Program-made: the position numbers and the translations under genes
NCBI GenBank assembly: GCA_904063045.1
Contig: CAJFCJ010000019.1
Coordinates: 3,416,684 to 3,480,683 of the forward strand
Direction of reading: 5' to 3'
DNA: 64,000 nt
Origin: Dimorphilus gyrociliatus
Taxonomy: Eukaryota > Animalia > Annelida
The notes under the pieces: generated by a model
The model's database searches: none
The model's input: the letters and a program-made list of their open reading frames with translations, nothing else
What the model was told of the DNA's origin: nothing
Shown here: in pieces, positions 42,679 to 51,534 of the stretch
Layout: every line of letters starts with the position of its first letter
Position numbering within the stretch: position 1 is the first letter of the stretch

Positions 42679-45600
42679 TCAATTACTCGTTAAGCCATTA
42701 GAATGTTCTAAACAATCAATAGTATTAAATTTTAATTCACAAAATTCACTATTAGTAAGAGATTCAAGCTGTTCTGTTTGTTGAATTGACTTTTCTATTG
42801 ACATACTCCTTTTTCTTCTTCTTTCCTTTCTTTCAGTAAAAGCAAACTATTGATAAAAAATTTAAAACTTCTACTCTAAACTTACTCTAATTCATTCATT
42901 AGCGATTGTTTTGAGTTAATAATGACTGGATTGAATTTGGCTTGGTCCAATAATTTGGTAATATGATACTTCTCCTTTAAAAGAATATATATATATATAT
43001 AAATTAATACTATATAATATATAACTTTGACATAGACCTTTCTCTCTCTAACTTTAAGCCAATTAGGTTTATCTGGTATAAATATATCTATAAGAAATTT
43101 CACCAAGAAGACAACATGCTGTTCATTTGATTGTTTTGTATTTTATGAATTAAATGCTAAAACGAAAGAATCGTTAATTACTTCAAATCCTATTACTATT
43201 AATAGTTGTTTAGTAGGTGAATTGAATGATTTTCCCCAATAGGATGTAAACGCTATTAAGCATGCATTTGTAACTGTTCCAATTATATTTAAAATATGTA
43301 GAATACCGAACCACATTCCTATAAAAATCTTATATATAGTTATTTTATAATTGTTTTTTCTTTATCTTCATAATTTTTTCGTTACCAATATCGTCTGATA
43401 TGACGCCAATAGGCCTACGAAAATTCCATAACATTCGTTTCCCATCCTGTCGTATGTCCATTAAGCAAACAATTAAAGCAATTAGAGGGGCCAGCGGAAA
43501 TGACGCGGCGAATAGCTAAGAAATATTTATATATCTAAAATATATATGTAACAATTTACTGATGAATTGAACATTTTTTTTACCATAAGATAACCGTACA
43601 TAATGATTTTTTCAGTGAATTCTGATAGTGTAAAATCATTTAAATCTGGTTTTTTTCTCTCTCTCTCTAAGAAGGAATTTTGTAGAATTTCTTTTCTCTT
43701 AATTTCATCTTCGCTATCAATCTTTTTACCCAGATAATATTTAAGAGATATCATTTTCCTCTTAAATAAACTGATAAAGAAATAATAAAGAAATAACGTA
43801 TTATCTTATAATATAGAAAGTTTTTACATTAATAAAACATCTTTAAAAAATTTTGGAAATGGTTTTAATATCATTAAAACCAATAATTGGAGAGAAAGCA
43901 TCGCCATACAATTGTTATCTGTTCCACAACTGTCGGAATAACTTGATCCCATACCAAACATTCCATTGTCCCCGTAATCAATCTTAATAGAACGAGGAAT
44001 AATCTATTAATGAGCATTACCTTTTTCGTCAACCTACCCCTCGGAAGAAAGCTATATAGATGAGTGATGAATAACTATTGGCAAACTGAAAAGCGAATAG
44101 TTTAACAATCAAGGCATCGTCGTATTGACTCTGAGTTCTGTGATTTTCTAAATATTAAATAATTAACGAATGAAATGATGAATAAGAAATGTAGGGATCA
44201 ATAATTATTTTGACTATATCAAACCCCAGTTGGTAAGGACATAGGCCAAGTAATAATAGACTTTACCAAGCATTAATATTGATACAGCATTCAGAACAGA
44301 TGGTATTAGTGCATTTACTAATATACAAAAGTACTTTGAACTACAATACTGTACAGTTGCATAAACCCTGAATAAGATGACTAGAGTCAGCGAAACAATA
44401 ACAATTAAAACCTAAAGTAAAGATAGAAAATTCGTTTTCGTCTATGAATCAGTTAGACAAGAGATAATACGTATTTTAAGGAAATGGATTACTTAACCAT
44501 AAACAATATGACTGTAACTGATGTTAAATACTTAAGAAATTTCCTTGATATAGGATAATATAGTATTTCCTCGTCAGTAATTAAATCTCGTTTCGTCTTT
44601 GTACCGTAAAATTCCGGTCTATCTGGTTCGTACTCCTCATAGAAATCAACATCCCAATAATAGGCTAGTATTGCTTTTTTCCTTTTCCATATTTCTAAGA
44701 ATATTGTTCCCCATAGGCAAATTATTAGAGCGTAATAAGGAGTAAGATCATTATCAAAAGCGTGTCTAACGACATTAATAGAGTTTTGAACTGCCTGTTT
44801 AGTTCTAATTTGCAATGGGGGGGGGGGGAGGAGGGAGGGGAGCGCATATTTAATTTTAATTTCATACCATTAGAATATAAATTACGAACATTTCAACCGG
44901 ATTTGTTGTATTCGGAAGGGGCGTGGTATAATTATGACTTTGAGAAACGCTTAAGTATAGACCATAAGAAAAGACTCCCAACCCAATAAATGCAGGAATC
45001 CAAAGACTCACTATTAAAATACCAACCCATGCGAAATAGAAGGCAATTTTTTCTCCGAAATAGTTACGAATTTTCCATATTGGCTGATATTTTCGATAAT
45101 TTAACCAAGTTTCCTTCGTAAATATAGAAGACATTAGACAATAGAAAAACACGCTAAAATATCGCATCATCCTCTTACGTGCAGCTCTTTTCTTGCATCT
45201 TTAAACAGTAATTCTTTACCTTTAGGTGGATCATGAAGAACAAAGGAACAGCGATAGATCCTTAGTATCTCTTTCTTAGCATTTTTATATGGATCCAAGT
45301 CACTTTCATCATGCATTACAAACGAATCGCTAAATACCTTTTTCATAAGTAAATACTGAAGACCTATCTTTGGGAAGAGAATTATACTAATTCATATATT
45401 TATAACTTTGTTATTTTTGTACTAGATAAAGTTAACCTCTTCTACTGAGTATATTTTCATTTTCGTCTTTTCTTAAATCTATATTAATAAGGATATTGTG
45501 TGTCTAAAGAGGAGATATCAATAGGTTGTTTCAATAGGTTTACACATGCAAGACGACTTTTTAGATATATATAACATAAATTATCACCAGAAAATTTCTC

Positions 45601-46242
45601 AATGAAGATCTAAAGAAAACGTTTGGTTTGTTGTAATTATTATACATTTTCAACTTATCCGTTTTAAAAGTGGTAGCAACCCTGTCAACTAAATCGGATA
45701 ATAATTGTATAATTAATAAATCTTCTTGTTTGTTTATAGATTAAAAACCTTCATCGTCTGTTACGAATAGTTTCTTTTCTATTTTGCGAAAGAATTTAAA
45801 AAAGTTAAGATGCTCTTCAGGGATTTCAAGCTAAGAAAATTTTGTTTAAAGTAATTAGCTATTAGTTGATAATCTTTTCAATTATTAACTCCTCTTAGTT
45901 CCATTTCTAGTTTAATCTTTTCTGCCTGTTCGCATAGCCTATAAAATGGAGTATGAATCTTTATAAAGATATTCATTTTATCCACATTTCCTGAGTCTTC
46001 AACCTCTTCGGTTTCGAACTCTAGATCTTCAGCTTTCATTTGTTCCTTTAAAATGTTTCTCTTATATTCGTAGTGTAAAATATATTTGTGCTACAGTTTA
46101 CCAAAAATCGATTACGCAACTCTTCATTTTCAACTAATTCCTCTTTAGGATACACTAGGACGTAATCTATTTTTTTCACTTCATATTCTACTTCGTCCTC
46201 ATCGGATGTCAAAGGCGTTAGAGTTAAATTTTCTTCCGCCAT
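42679..46242 (-). CDS. Anoctamin / TMEM16 family protein (last exon frame uncertain)
   Basis: IRNYFGEKIAFYFAW, FDN...FLEIWKR, ENHRTQSQYDDALIVKLFAFQFANSY, EFTEKIIMYGYLMLFAASFPLAP, RRPI and DIGMWFGIL. Confidence 0.92.
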
Positions 46243-46600: not shown

Positions 46601-49600
46601 TTAAACTTCCAATTCAAATATATTGTCAACCGCTTGTCCTCTTTCGTGCCTTTTCCACATAGTACCATATAATCTTTCAAGATCTTTTGCGTAAATATCA
46701 GTATCAAACAGCGTTGATGTCATCCTTTTCCTCCAAACTTTCGCCCGAATAGCTTTTCTGAATACTTCATCTGTTCCAAGACGAATAGCAATTCTTTCGT
46801 AATCAGCCTTATCCTTGGCAACTAATTCTTGAACACCTAGAGCACACAATTGGGAAGACGCTACGCGGGACGCCAGCGTCTCTCCAGGAAGGGTAACCAT
46901 TGGTGTTCCCGCCCAGAGAACATCCATTCCTGTTGTGTGCCCATTGCAAAGTGGTGTATCTAAACATACATCAGCTAATTGGCCCCTTCTAACATGTTCT
47001 TCTTTAGGGGCAACTTGCGAGAAGACTACGCGTGTTTGATCCAATCCCAGCTTAGCCACATGTGCCAAAAGATTAGGCTCTCCCACAGCTGGGAATCTTA
47101 GTAGCCAAAGAACAGATTTTGGGACTTCCTGTAATATATTTACCCACATTCTAATGGTTTCTGGATCGGTTTTATACAGCTGATTAAAATTGCAGTAAAC
47201 AATAGCGTCATCAGACAGACCATACTGTGCTCTTGTGGATACTATAATAGTTGATGGTATATCTTCTCCTGACGCAGCTTTTGAATTTGTTTGACTAATA
47301 CTTAATCCGCTCTGGATTGTAAAAGACTCAAATTGAACGTTCGGTTGATCGGCTGATTGCGATGAAACATCTAAACAAATTTTGGAAAATTCCTCTGAAA
47401 GGAGGGGTAATGTCAATTGTCCATCTTCTGTCTCTTCTACTTCACCTATTTGCACTTCGCCAGTCCCGTGAGCTTCCACAAGTTCTTCAAGATTATTAAA
47501 ATTAACAATTGCCGCATTTTCTCTGCTTTTACCGTCTTTTATCAAAACAGCTCTGTTTCTTAAATGAGGAAACATATTCTTATGATCTCCTATGAAAAAA
47601 GTATGTGGCATATAAGCTAATTTTTCACTATACAAGTAAGCAAGATGGCCTGGTGATGTAACTTTATCCGTAATTATATAATCCATACACTGTGCACCTG
47701 ATGTCGAAGGATAGCCTAACCACATTACTTGCAATGGAGCAGGTTTCAGCGAAAACAATTCGTTGCGGGCACCCTTTGTATAACCATTCATATTTACAAG
47801 GATATTAATACCATCAGCATAAATTCTATCGGCTGCTTTCGAATTACAAGGTATGGAAGATAAATCAACAAAATGCTCGCCCTCAGTCATAATTTTGTTC
47901 CTAAAGTTAGTGTTGTCGTCAGAAGTGAGGGCATAACAAAATACCTCGACGTTCGATGTATGTTTTCCGGGTATCGATTGCATCAAATGAGAAGTAGGGT
48001 GATTACCGAAATCTGAACTAACATAACCTATCCGTAGTTTACCTTGTAAAGTTTTCTGATGTTCGTAAGGTTTTTTATGCAATACATTAACTTTTTCTTG
48101 GCAAAGAGCTGCATGTCTTGCTGCGATGGCTTTGCGCATTTCATGGGTTAATGGATATAGCATAGAATGATGAGGGTGAACGGAAGGTAAACGATTCTTT
48201 TCTAACTGCTCAGCTACAATTGCCACTAATTTTTTCATTCGATATTCATAGTCATTCCAATCGCAGACTATCTGTAGGCAATGTGCCAAATTACAATAAG
48301 CGTCAGGAAAGTCGGGTTTCAATTTCAGAGCTGTTCTATAGGAAGCTATAGCATCAGGTATGTTTCCGCTGTCTTTATGTATGGAGGCTAGATTTGAATG
48401 TGCATCAGCAAATGCTGGATTGATTTGTATAGCACGATTGTAACACTGTAGGGCACCCTGTACATCTTGCATTTCTTTTAGTGTATTTCCCATATTTGAG
48501 TATGCATCCGCAAACGTTGGAGAAATACGTATTGCTTGACCGTAATGCTCAAGCGCCTCTTGTAGTTTTCCTTGCTGTTGCAGCACCGAAGCCAAATTGG
48601 AATGGGCGACTGCAAATTCTGGATAAATTTCCAGAGCTTTTGAATAATAAGTAACTGCTTCATCTTTGTTGCCTTGCTCAAATTTGATATTTGCTAAATT
48701 ATTTAAGGAATCTACGTGTGTGGGACATAATTGAAGAGCCACATTATAGTATTTTTCGGCTTCAGTTATCTACAAAGATCATAATTAGGTATTGATATAG
48801 AGTAATATGTGGAAACTTACCTTTCCCTTCTCTTTAAGTGCATTAGCAAGATTGCAGTAAGCGTCAGGAAAGTTTGGTTGTAATTCAATGGATCTTTTAT
48901 AAGTATCAATAGCTAAATCAATCAAGCCTTGCTCATAGTACACACAGGCTAAATTTCCGTGAACAACTGCATGATTCGGACTCAAATTTAAAGCTCTCAG
49001 ATAAGCTGCGACTGCTCGATCGAAGATTCTTGCTTCTTTTAAAACATTCCCTAGATTTATGTAGGCATCCAAAAAGTTAGGATCCAGAGCAACGGCCTGT
49101 AATGTAGGGTTTTTGAAGTTAATCAAACAAATTATTTGCAACAGTACCTTTTCAAAATGATGAATAGCCAACCAAATTTCTCCTTGAGCATTGAAGACAC
49201 AGCCCAAGTTGCTCCATGCGACTGCGAAGTTAGGTTGGGTTTCGATTGCCTTCAGGTAGCATGCCTAATCATAAAATTAAACAGGGTTAGATTTGGTTAG
49301 CTTATTTCAGACGCAGCGCAGGGAGAGCGTCCCTAATGCGCACGCATTGCAAATCGCTATCGCATCGCACGCAAGCATCGCTAATATATACTCGTTTACC
49401 AACTTTTTTACATAGAAACAATAACAATGAATTAAATAGTTGGTAAACGATATGCGCACAATATCGCCGCTGCTATATAAAAAAAATAGAATAAACGCTA
49501 TGCGCGTGGTTCAAGCGCAGATATCGCAGGCGCTACGCAAAATGCGCAATATTCTGGTTGTTCTGAAAACAACTTGCCTTTACTGACAAGTCAAGTTATG

Positions 49601-50249
49601 CATACCCAGTACAGGGCAGTTCCTTTTCATTTAGTCCAACGTCACTGGCGGTGTTCGTCGATGCCACTAACACTACGACAGCAATAAACGATTATTAGCC
49701 TTGATGTAAAAATTTGACTGTTTGTTGAAGTTATAGTTTTATCCCAACCCCATCATATTTTCTTGTGCACTAAAGGACCCAAAAGCTGATAGATTTATCG
49801 TATTATCATTCTTTAATTACATAATTTTAAATTATATAATATTATCAATAGCAATTGGGCAGCCTCAGATTAAAATCTCAGTCTTAATTTTCCATTCACA
49901 TTAGACAATCGTTTGACACAAAACATAAAGCACGCTGTTAAAATATCATTATTTAGTGTATAAAAAATCCTTGCAACAAACATATTGGAATGTATCAAAA
50001 AAAGTAAGAAAAAAGCGCTTCCTTGTCGCGTTATCGCTTAGATTTCCTTTTAAAAAGCTACATTTTTTCAAAATTAGCATTTTTGATGGCTCGGAAACCC
50101 GATGAGCCTGTAAAAATAAGACTGATGATTTCTGCAACATCTGCTATCTATGATTGCCTGCTGCAAGGATCTTGTATAAATTTATATACATATATGTGTG
50201 TATGTATATATATATACATATATACTATTTGCTGAGTATATATATATAC

Positions 50250-50292
<43 letters not shown>

Positions 50293-51285
50293 TAACAATG
50301 ATAATGCCAATGGAGGAACTGAGGCACAAGAAAGTAGTCGATAATTTTGTCTAAAAACATCCCTACCCATAACTAAAAACAATATTATTCTATTCACTGG
50401 ACAGGTTACACACCTTTGCTTCGTCTAATCGACCTAAAGCTTTTAATAGATTACCCAAATCAGATCTAACGCAGTACAAGTCCTGAAAAAATTATGTAAT
50501 TTTTTAAAAGTTAAACACATTCAATGAAAAATAACTTACGGGGTTGTATCTCAAAGCCGTACAATAACATTGTACTGCTTGTTCCATGTCACCAGCGGCC
50601 ACCAGAGCTGCAGCTAGATTTATATAACCATCAATGAAGTCAGGTTTAAGGCGTACGGCATGTCTATAGTTCTCCAGTGCTTCTTGTAGTTTATCTTTTT
50701 CCTTGTAAACATTACCCAAATTACTGTAGGCTTCAGCAAGCATAGGGTTTTGTTTTATAGCCAACTGACTAAAATATGCCGACCTGTAAACAAGAAAATT
50801 GAGTTTCTTAAGCAATAAAAGTCAGGCACTCTATATTCGTACTTGTCTAGTCGTCGACATTGAAAATGAATTGATGAGAGAAGGAGGAGCACCCCGGTAT
50901 TTTCTGCATCTTGACGAAAAAGCATCATACAATGAGCTTCTGCATTCTCATAATCTCCCATTTGATACTCTCTATGTGCTAGTTCAGCTAGAGCTGTAGA
51001 ATCATTTTATTTATTTTACGATTTGGATAAATCTTATCTTATACTAATTTCCTAAGCTCTTTCAATCTCTTTCAAAGCTTTTAATTTAAAATTTCATAAG
51101 ATTCTTAACCAAAAGAAGTTCCCTGATAAACTTGACGGTTTTCGACAACAAAGACGCTCTCACGATTCATAATAATTTTACACTTTGCACGTTTTTATAC
51201 CAACAATAATAAAATAAACACGTTCAAAACTTTAATACTTACAAGCTGCGTCGGTAACCTGTGCTATATCGTCTGGATGACCCAT
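46601..51285 (-). CDS. OGT: O-GlcNAc transferase (7 exons)
   Basis: First exon [14 protein letters not shown], then [10 protein letters not shown] and a near-identical TPR array ([23 protein letters not shown]|[21 protein letters not shown]), [31 protein letters not shown] and LCNGHTT. Confidence 0.98.
49265..50413 (-). other. OGT: 1,149-bp OGT intron between ...RLDEAK and ACYLKAIE...
   Basis: Donor AAG|gtgtgt at 50413 and acceptor gattag|GCA at 49265. Roughly 20 times the typical intron length in this window. Confidence 0.92.
50183..50290. repeat. (TA)n / (TACA) microsatellite cluster inside the long OGT intron
   Basis: Directly visible; explains three overlapping IYIYIY ORFs in the track. 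Confidence 0.9.
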
Positions 51286-51534
51286 ATTTTCTCGAGAAAA
51301 TATCACTTTGTGTAGACACAACTAGTCGACCGGACAGAGTGACGTTACAAAAAGTAGTTCCACGTTGTCACCTGTACTTTGAGATTTTCAGAAAAAATAT
51401 TTTTATAATATCACTAAATTGTGTTTTATAAAATTATGAAGTATTAAAACATACAGTTTCTTTAAAAGTACACAAATTAACTAATAATAGATAGCTAATA
51501 CAAGCCGCGTAGTAATACAAACTCTTTCGAGTAA

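Follow-up and report, generated by a model that had tools for sequence, protein, structure and literature searches.

A conserved stop-carrying cassette exon in the long fourth intron of the OGT gene of the annelid Dimorphilus gyrociliatus

The regulated intron of the mammalian O-GlcNAc transferase (OGT) gene is the fourth one (Park, 2017, PMC5588854). It contains an intronic splicing silencer (ISS), which overlaps a decoy exon and extends downstream of it (Park, 2017, PMC5588854; Parra, 2018, PMC6097662; Tan, 2020, PMC7261177; Govindan and Conrad, 2025, PMC12017769; PMC12864184). This poison or decoy exon measures 143-153 nt and uses alternative 5' and 3' splice sites, the intron harbors a 397-nt ultraconserved element, and high O-GlcNAc leads to more inclusion of the exon and more detention of the intron (PMC6097662, PMC7261177, PMC12017769, PMC12864184). 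The literature traces the element only as far as jawless fish, and Drosophila is without an ISS-like element (Park et al., PMC5588854); no description of an invertebrate OGT poison cassette was found in open-access papers and bioRxiv. What is new here is the architecture in an annelid, Dimorphilus gyrociliatus, as read from a stretch of 64,000 nt of its genome (assembly GCA_904063045.1, contig CAJFCJ010000019.1, positions 3,416,684 to 3,480,683), which is referred to as the window. The fourth intron of the OGT gene in this window encloses a small cassette exon with an in-frame stop codon, which is used in two lineages and is kept, together with its splice sites and flanks, by strong purifying selection. 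We consider it probable that this intron represents a regulated unproductive-splicing module and thus an invertebrate counterpart of the vertebrate decoy/poison exon.

Two further kinds of described systems come close to this one, namely the ultraconserved poison exons of SR proteins and other splicing factors, which act by alternative splicing coupled to nonsense-mediated decay (NMD), and the decoy exons in retained introns of ARGLU1, SF3B1, and DDX39B (PMC6097662, PMC7373989). As in the former, the Dimorphilus cassette carries an in-frame stop, its flanks are conserved above the level of coding exons, and it presumably serves to limit expression through feedback. Because OGT, unlike the SR proteins, is not an RNA-binding protein, any such feedback must pass via a sensor factor, and the intronic conservation above coding level holds only among dinophilid-level relatives, i.e., within one small annelid clade and not across phyla. 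As in the latter group, a small cryptic exon, the several splice sites of which are weak or compete with each other, lies in an intron of relatively great length and is associated with the retention of flanking intron parts. However, those decoys are rarely spliced into mature RNA, whereas inclusion joints are prominent in Dimorphilus, and the Dimorphilus intron is only 1.1 kb long, in a genome with very short introns.

Structure and splicing of the long OGT intron

The OGT gene was read from the minus strand of the window as seven coding exons (3,066 nt, 1,022 amino acids), which equals the length of the annotated protein DgyrCDS12170 (P0001; annotated as protein O-GlcNAc transferase), with a match of 100% in exon 7. 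The introns measure, in order, 249, 59, 57, 1,149, 51, and 51 nt, in a genome of 77.9 Mb with a median intron of 66 bp (PMC7854359). All six junctions are found as spliced contigs in public RNA runs, including the excision of the entire 1,149 nt of intron 4, which separates ...GRLDEAK from ACYLKAIET. An earlier note on this DNA had singled out this intron as oversized among short neighbors and as containing GC-richer blocks; its coordinates (49265-50413), junction, and excision were all verified, and the GC content amounts to 0.46-0.475 near 49200-49400 and 49500-49700 versus 0.22-0.30 elsewhere in the intron. As a separate observation, intron 1 (50994-51242) is also several-fold above the genome median and is without contig cover in the RNA runs.

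The alternative splicing of intron 4 is seen in the contigs of run X8, which are 100% identical to the window and must be RNA-derived because they are spliced. Besides the full excision, they contain three joints, all with canonical ends on the minus strand. One connects the donor of exon 4 to an acceptor AG at 49674/3 (49672->50414), skipping 741 nt, and is also present in run X2. The other two lead into exon 5, either from a GU donor at 49605/4 (49263->49605, cut +1; 341 nt skipped) or from a GC donor at 49577/6 (49261->49575; 313 nt skipped), the latter with five ambiguous letters, where a shift by three gives GC..AG. A contig (49605-49674) spans the cassette enclosed by these sites, and the lengths of the parts add up to that of the intron (741 + 67 + 341 = 1,149). 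The exon 4 donor therefore serves both the full excision and the joining to the cassette, which uses two 5' splice sites (GU 49605 and GC 49577), and only one 3' splice site is seen. As the last codon of exon 4 is complete, the reading of the cassette starts with TGT TAG, i.e., with an in-frame stop at the second codon, and three exon junctions remain 3' of this stop. The frame running from the cassette into exon 5 is open but lacks an ATG, and the joints place the cassette behind exon 4 and not at the start of a transcript; its interpretation as an in-frame alternative start for an mOGT-like isoform was rejected on these two grounds.

Run X2 represents a close relative, the exons of which differ by 5-12%, nearly all of it at third codon positions. 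Both the full excision and the exon 4-to-cassette joint occur in this run, and an unspliced contig (49237-49674) starts in exon 5, includes the downstream sub-intron together with the cassette, and ends exactly at the cassette acceptor. Run X5 adds an unspliced contig crossing both donors (49441-49619), and X8 contains intronic contigs at 49439-49604 and 49645-50179 and none over the 249-nt intron 1, the level, poly(A) status, and compartment of such RNA being unreadable from contigs. As the alternative joints show, intron 4 is not constitutively spliced. The contig depths in X8, which are indicative only, come to 205 for skipping plus 392 and 113 for inclusion with either donor, i.e., 710 as compared to 711 for the contig of exons 2-3; on the upstream side, the equally indicative sum is 205 + 493 = 698, and the corresponding figures in X2 are 25 against 20. 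If the depths are taken at face value, which is again indicative only, cassette inclusion is near 70% of transcripts in the X8 sample. The main alternative form in the runs looks like cassette inclusion, not detention of the whole intron.

Conservation within related annelids

Relatives were reached via the members of the protein cluster, which led to a 7.6-kb genomic contig of one species (L013) and a spliced transcript of another (L014); a third candidate (L015, cluster member P0122) shows no match to the locus and was discarded. The species of L013 exhibits about 90% amino acid identity and about 80% nucleotide identity in exon 7. Its exons 5-7 are 80-86% identical to those of the window, with 46% of the third codon positions being different, and introns 5 and 6 are unalignable (38-46% identity over all aligned columns). 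The central block of intron 4 (block C in Table 1) reaches from 40 nt ahead of the acceptor through the cassette and both donors to 48 nt on their 3' side; it is 98.4% identical, as compared to 87% for the best 183-nt coding window of exon 7, and it contains a perfect run of 95 nt, as compared to 29 nt anywhere in exon 7. The cassette acceptor and both donors are 100% identical in L013, and the downstream sub-intron is 88% identical overall. The stretch 49237-49674 shows a similar constraint in X2, where 424 nt of contig contain 14 substitutions and 22 indel letters, versus 33 substitutions in 275 nt of exon 6. Across the three lineages, the cassette measures 66, 67, or 68 nt, and TGT TAG and all splice sites are unchanged. 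Since the length varies while TGT TAG stays, the conserved property is the stop and not a frameshift.

Further features lie between the cassette and exon 5. An array of 12 UGCG motifs within 313 nt stands against 0.45 expected from the window, a 27-fold excess, and two hairpins are predicted. In the hairpin close to exon 5, five pairs are changed on one side and one on both sides between the window and L013, all of them still pairing. A short stem is also predicted between the GC donor (GGCAAGUU) and GACUUGUC just after the GU donor, but these sequences are invariant and thus neutral on structure.

The extra length of the intron is not due to a species-specific repeat, because the sole recurrent part is a TA/TG microsatellite (found more than 100 times in the genome) and the rest is conserved in L013. 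The other ~1,000 nt are single copy, and their two unique halves match nothing else in the 77.9-Mb genome. An origin from a repeat or transposon was rejected, as the whole intron and the unique halves hit only the microsatellite in the worm's own genome, and so was a nested protein gene, as only short open reading frames (ORFs) occur on either strand, with the longer ones lying within the low-complexity TA repeat. A scan of the intron against Rfam at a permissive threshold gave only sub-threshold mir-297/466 hits within the TA repeat, and ARAGORN detected no tRNA in the intron.

Table 1. Features of the OGT locus in the window. Identities refer to the relative L013, hairpins and motifs are given as read on the minus strand, and a slash in a donor sequence marks the exon-intron boundary.
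Feature	Position	Strand	Basis or content
OGT exon 1	51285-51243	minus	sequence reading
OGT exon 2	50993-50843	minus	sequence reading
OGT exon 3	50783-50540	minus	sequence reading
OGT exon 4, 69 nt	50482-50414	minus	joints 49263->50413 and 49672->50414; donor AAG/GTGTGT
OGT intron 4, 1,149 nt, GT..AG, phase 0	50413-49265	minus	1,149-nt skip in X8, X1, X2
TA/TG microsatellite	50164..50300		only intron part repeated elsewhere in the genome
Conserved block A, upstream sub-intron	50086..50175	minus	92% identity; holds UUAUUUUUACAG/G and a small GGCUC..GAGCC hairpin
Conserved block B, upstream sub-intron	49903..49985	minus	95% identity; holds 3' splice-site-like UAUUUUAACAG
Upstream sub-intron, 741 nt	49673..50413	minus	exon 4 donor to cassette acceptor; joint 49672->50414 in X8, X2
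Ultraconserved block C, 183 nt	49530..49712	minus	180/183 identical (98.4%)
Poison cassette exon, short form, 67 nt	49606..49672	minus	donor TGG/GTATGC, GT at 49605-49604
28-nt extension to the 95-nt long form (49672-49578)	49578..49605	minus	GC donor AAG/GCAAGT at 49577-49576
Array of 12 UGCG motifs (7 GCGC)	49315..49551	minus	downstream sub-intron; most kept in L013
Predicted 13-bp hairpin (UCGUUUACCAACU with AGUUGGUAAACGA)	49392..49450	minus	RNAalifold; stem kept in L013, one A-U to G-U, loop diverged
Predicted GC-rich hairpin, 45-80 nt upstream of exon 5 acceptor	49311..49345	minus	RNAalifold, two sequences
OGT exon 5, 117 nt (ACYLKAIET...HHFEK)	49264-49148	minus	sequence reading and spliced contigs
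OGT exon 6	49096-48821	minus	sequence reading
OGT exon 7, 722 codons, without introns	48769-46604	minus	sequence reading

Apart from intron 4, the 5' part of the gene stands out by an unusually high nucleotide conservation among the relatives. Exon 2 differs at only 1 of 151 positions in X2, versus 33 of 275 in exon 6, and the identities to L014 are 91% for exon 2 and 95% for the 5' untranslated region and exon 1 (51243-51329), versus 78-81% for exons 3 and 5-7. One X2 joint leads directly from exon 1 to exon 3 (50779->51243) and skips the 151-nt exon 2 (50843-50993), which shifts the frame; exon 2 skipping may represent a second regulated splicing event. On the downstream side of OGT, an anoctamin-like gene is syntenic between the window (44031-46030) and L013 (4266-6252), with about 71% nucleotide identity.

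The OGT junction in other animals

A comparison of the gene structures was based on the pike gene (L022) as vertebrate reference for both intron position and sequence. The first six coding exons of pike share their boundaries with those of Dimorphilus, and pike intron 4 (L022 3244-7134) splits ...GRLEEAK from ACYLKAIET and is by far the longest of the first five introns. The assignment of the Dimorphilus intron to the vertebrate intron 4 position, as made in the earlier note, is therefore corroborated by identical boundaries of exons 1-6 and by the same junction in phase 0. The six 5' introns of the Dimorphilus gene are all positioned as in pike, and the C-terminal 722 codons (46604-48769) form one intronless exon; as far as can be read from the sequence, this pattern fits a loss of 3' introns with retention of the 5' ones. 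The 69-nt exon 4 also occurs in pike, in the annelids Owenia and Ridgeia, and in the brachiopod Lingula, and the intron following it at this junction measures 3,627 nt in Owenia, 2,592 nt in Ridgeia, where no other intron of the gene is longer, and 2,501 nt in Lingula.

The Dimorphilus intron resembles vertebrate OGT intron 4 in gene, position, and phase, in being much longer than its neighbors (1,149 nt here, 3,891 nt in pike), in containing an internal cassette with a premature stop and competing splice sites, in having its conserved regulatory sequence mainly downstream of the cassette, in an intronic conservation exceeding that of coding sequence, and in the presence of intron-containing RNA beside spliced mRNA. 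It differs by the lack of detectable sequence similarity, as judged from pike only, and by the cassette size of 67 or 95 nt versus 143-153 nt. The cassette also shows one acceptor and two donors, one of GC type, whereas the mammalian decoy has alternative 5' and 3' sites, and the main alternative form in the runs is apparently cassette inclusion and not whole-intron detention.

Indications of similar cassettes in other invertebrates were obtained with residues 1-176 of the database protein P0001 as query of a word index, from which the 120 best short (138-300 amino acids) N-terminal OGT fragments were taken. As many as 100 of these 120 break off right after ...EAK, either with a tail starting with V (GTN codon), i.e., reading into the intron (65 fragments), or with a tail starting with another residue, i.e., spliced elsewhere (35 fragments). 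The remaining ones stop exactly at EAK (4), read into intron 3 (10), continue normally into exon 5 (4), or are unclassed (2). Note that some of the fragments are ab initio gene models, possibly just broken at a long intron, and that many are transcript contigs; five were fetched. Two cuttlefish contigs, the downstream ORF of which is 100% identical to OGT of Acanthosepion pharaonis, carry stop-bearing inserts of 262 and 245 nt between exons 4 and 5 (L019:610-871 and L020:614-858), and the longer insert extends 17 nt past a GT, consistent with the use of two alternative donors. Copepod-like metatranscriptome contigs contain stop-carrying cassettes of 96 nt (L027:596-691, ending with TAG) and 64 nt (L028:668-731). 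An isopod-like contig shows a 722-nt insert (L021:714-1435), which is spliced at its start and abuts exon 5 with a 3' splice-site-like sequence at its end; it corresponds to the form seen in X2, with the upstream part spliced and the downstream part kept.

A sensitive blastn comparison of the Dimorphilus intron and its blocks with the introns of pike, Owenia, Ridgeia, and Lingula as well as the inserts from cuttlefish and crustaceans revealed no similarity beyond three short hits (25-45 nt) with weak E-values, of which the longest falls into the TA repeat. Homology to the vertebrate ISS/decoy sequence was not found in pike intron 4, on which it was tested, and a metagenome scan with the 34-nt invariant stretch gave no match. 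Because the inserts and introns are unlike in sequence, what is shared across phyla is position and logic. As the sequence is unlike pike intron 4 and unlike those of other phyla, the element may go back to a common ancestor, with turnover of the cis-elements, or may have arisen by repeated convergence. It is conceivable, if somewhat short of probable, that the bilaterian ancestor, more than 550 million years ago, already had a stop-carrying cassette between ...EAK and ACYLKAIET of its OGT, and that O-GlcNAc homeostasis by unproductive splicing predates the vertebrates. With the same reserve, the cis-elements may have been wholly turned over between phyla with position and logic being kept. 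The suggestion of the earlier note that the mechanism is older than the vertebrates agrees with the inserts bearing stops that a mollusc and crustaceans have at this junction.

Proposed function and alternative explanations

In the proposed mechanism, pairing of the exon 4 donor with the exon 5 acceptor would give productive mRNA, and pairing with the weak internal acceptor at 49673/4 would lead to inclusion of the 67-nt or 95-nt cassette, with translation ending after 169 OGT residues plus one cysteine; this product would be useless in any case. The inclusion isoform is a predicted NMD target because its stop, located at codon 2 of the cassette and >50 nt upstream of a junction, is followed by three exon junctions. 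The two competing cassette donors are the weak GUAUGC and the GC-type GCAAGU; for the latter, base pairing with the letters immediately 3' of the GU donor is predicted. One or several factors setting the inclusion level would probably bind to the region behind the cassette, with its UGCG array, its two hairpins, and an invariant stretch of about 50 nt. The same downstream elements and the competing donors may also decide whether and how fast the 341/313-nt sub-intron is removed, so that either a stop-carrying mRNA or a partly unspliced transcript would arise, both lowering the OGT yield. We infer from these features that inclusion lowers OGT output and that it is regulated. By analogy to mammals, the chances are about even that the regulatory input is the O-GlcNAc level. 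The proposal of the earlier note that the intron has been kept long for a splicing switch is supported by a poison cassette that is both used and conserved, by its pair of competing 5' splice sites, by intronic blocks conserved well above synonymous sites, and by intronic contigs in the RNA runs, with cassette inclusion and not whole-intron detention looking like the main form in these runs.

Two side observations concern other components known from the mammalian system. A reciprocal arrangement at the OGA gene, as with the detained introns of mammalian OGA, was rejected, since the OGA locus is without an oversized intron. Two loci coding for a DRY_EERY domain, the N-terminal domain of SFSWAP-type splicing regulators (G000:C16:249439-249768 and G000:C13:917450-917817), are candidates by sequence for the mammalian trans-factor SFSWAP, which says nothing on their function.

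Several points weigh against a regulated unproductive-splicing module of this kind. The RNA evidence consists of assembled contigs, not reads, so depths cannot rank isoforms and holes prove nothing, and the library type of X8 is unrecorded. A stop-carrying isoform as steady-state majority is unusual for an efficient NMD target, and its apparent abundance argues for weak NMD or nuclear retention. Block C does not fold better than shuffled sequences (z = -0.25), and the RNAalifold predictions are based on two sequences only, too few for a real covariation test. The OGA locus (G000:C15:993100-996100; L026:6100-9100) is compact, with many short exons and a largest gap of about 160 nt. Open-chromatin elements are frequent in the long introns of this genome (PMC7854359), so that blocks A and B may act in transcription and not in splicing, and the missing similarity to other phyla described above belongs here as well.

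The main alternative, which we regard as unlikely, is that the conserved blocks are transcriptional cis-regulatory DNA, such as an intronic enhancer or internal promoter of OGT or a neighboring gene, and that the cassette represents tolerated splicing noise. In addition to the open-chromatin elements of long introns, this view is favored by the CpG-rich 3' part of the intron (observed/expected ratio of 1.79, versus 0.83 for the window), and it may hold for blocks A and B, at the sites of which no splice joints are present in the contigs of the public runs. However, the strongest conservation is centered on the cassette acceptor and both donors, the in-frame TAG has been retained in spite of a drifting cassette length, two lineages have the exon 4-to-cassette joint, with inclusion contigs at least as deep as the skipping one, and unrelated animals have stop-bearing inserts at the same junction; transcriptional elements explain neither the conservation around used splice sites nor the retained stop. 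The abundance of the inclusion isoform, if taken as it appears, and the many animals with short N-terminal ORFs ending at this junction would also suit a functional short protein made of the first 169 OGT residues (~4.5 TPRs) plus one, acting for example as a dominant-negative form or an adaptor. We consider this improbable: beyond ...EAK, the tails of different clades have neither sequence nor length in common, which leaves the truncation as the only shared trait; the Dimorphilus cassette itself encodes nothing because of the stop at its second codon; the conservation reaches far into the non-coding flanks; and the mammalian counterpart is an NMD substrate (PMC7261177).

Two other explanations are effectively excluded. 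The intronic contigs in the RNA runs and the predicted hairpins might point to a non-coding RNA gene (snoRNA, miRNA, or other) as reason for both length and conservation, but the Rfam and tRNA searches and the ORFs on either strand yielded nothing credible, the hairpins are by eye without miRNA-like or snoRNA box features, and the splice joints account for the central block, leaving this a very small chance. The chance is next to nil for a long intron without special function, whose length would be neutral or the remnant of an old insertion, as might be thought from the microsatellite; the ~1,000 nt outside of it are single copy, conserved far above synonymous sites, and alternatively spliced.

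The mammalian O-GlcNAc homeostasis depends on the splicing of OGT intron 4, with a sensor linking the sugar modification to splicing. With the corresponding architecture at this junction, the annelid provides a compact and experimentally tractable version of 1.1 kb, marked by near-invariant blocks, and indicates that even in a miniaturized genome an intron stays long where it is needed for regulation at the RNA level. With the inserts from a mollusc and crustaceans, the question of a bilaterian ancestry of OGT self-limitation becomes answerable from existing RNA-seq data. If this ancestry proves true, the sensor would act via the general conserved splicing machinery and not via a conserved RNA motif, and Dimorphilus would be a minimal system for finding it.

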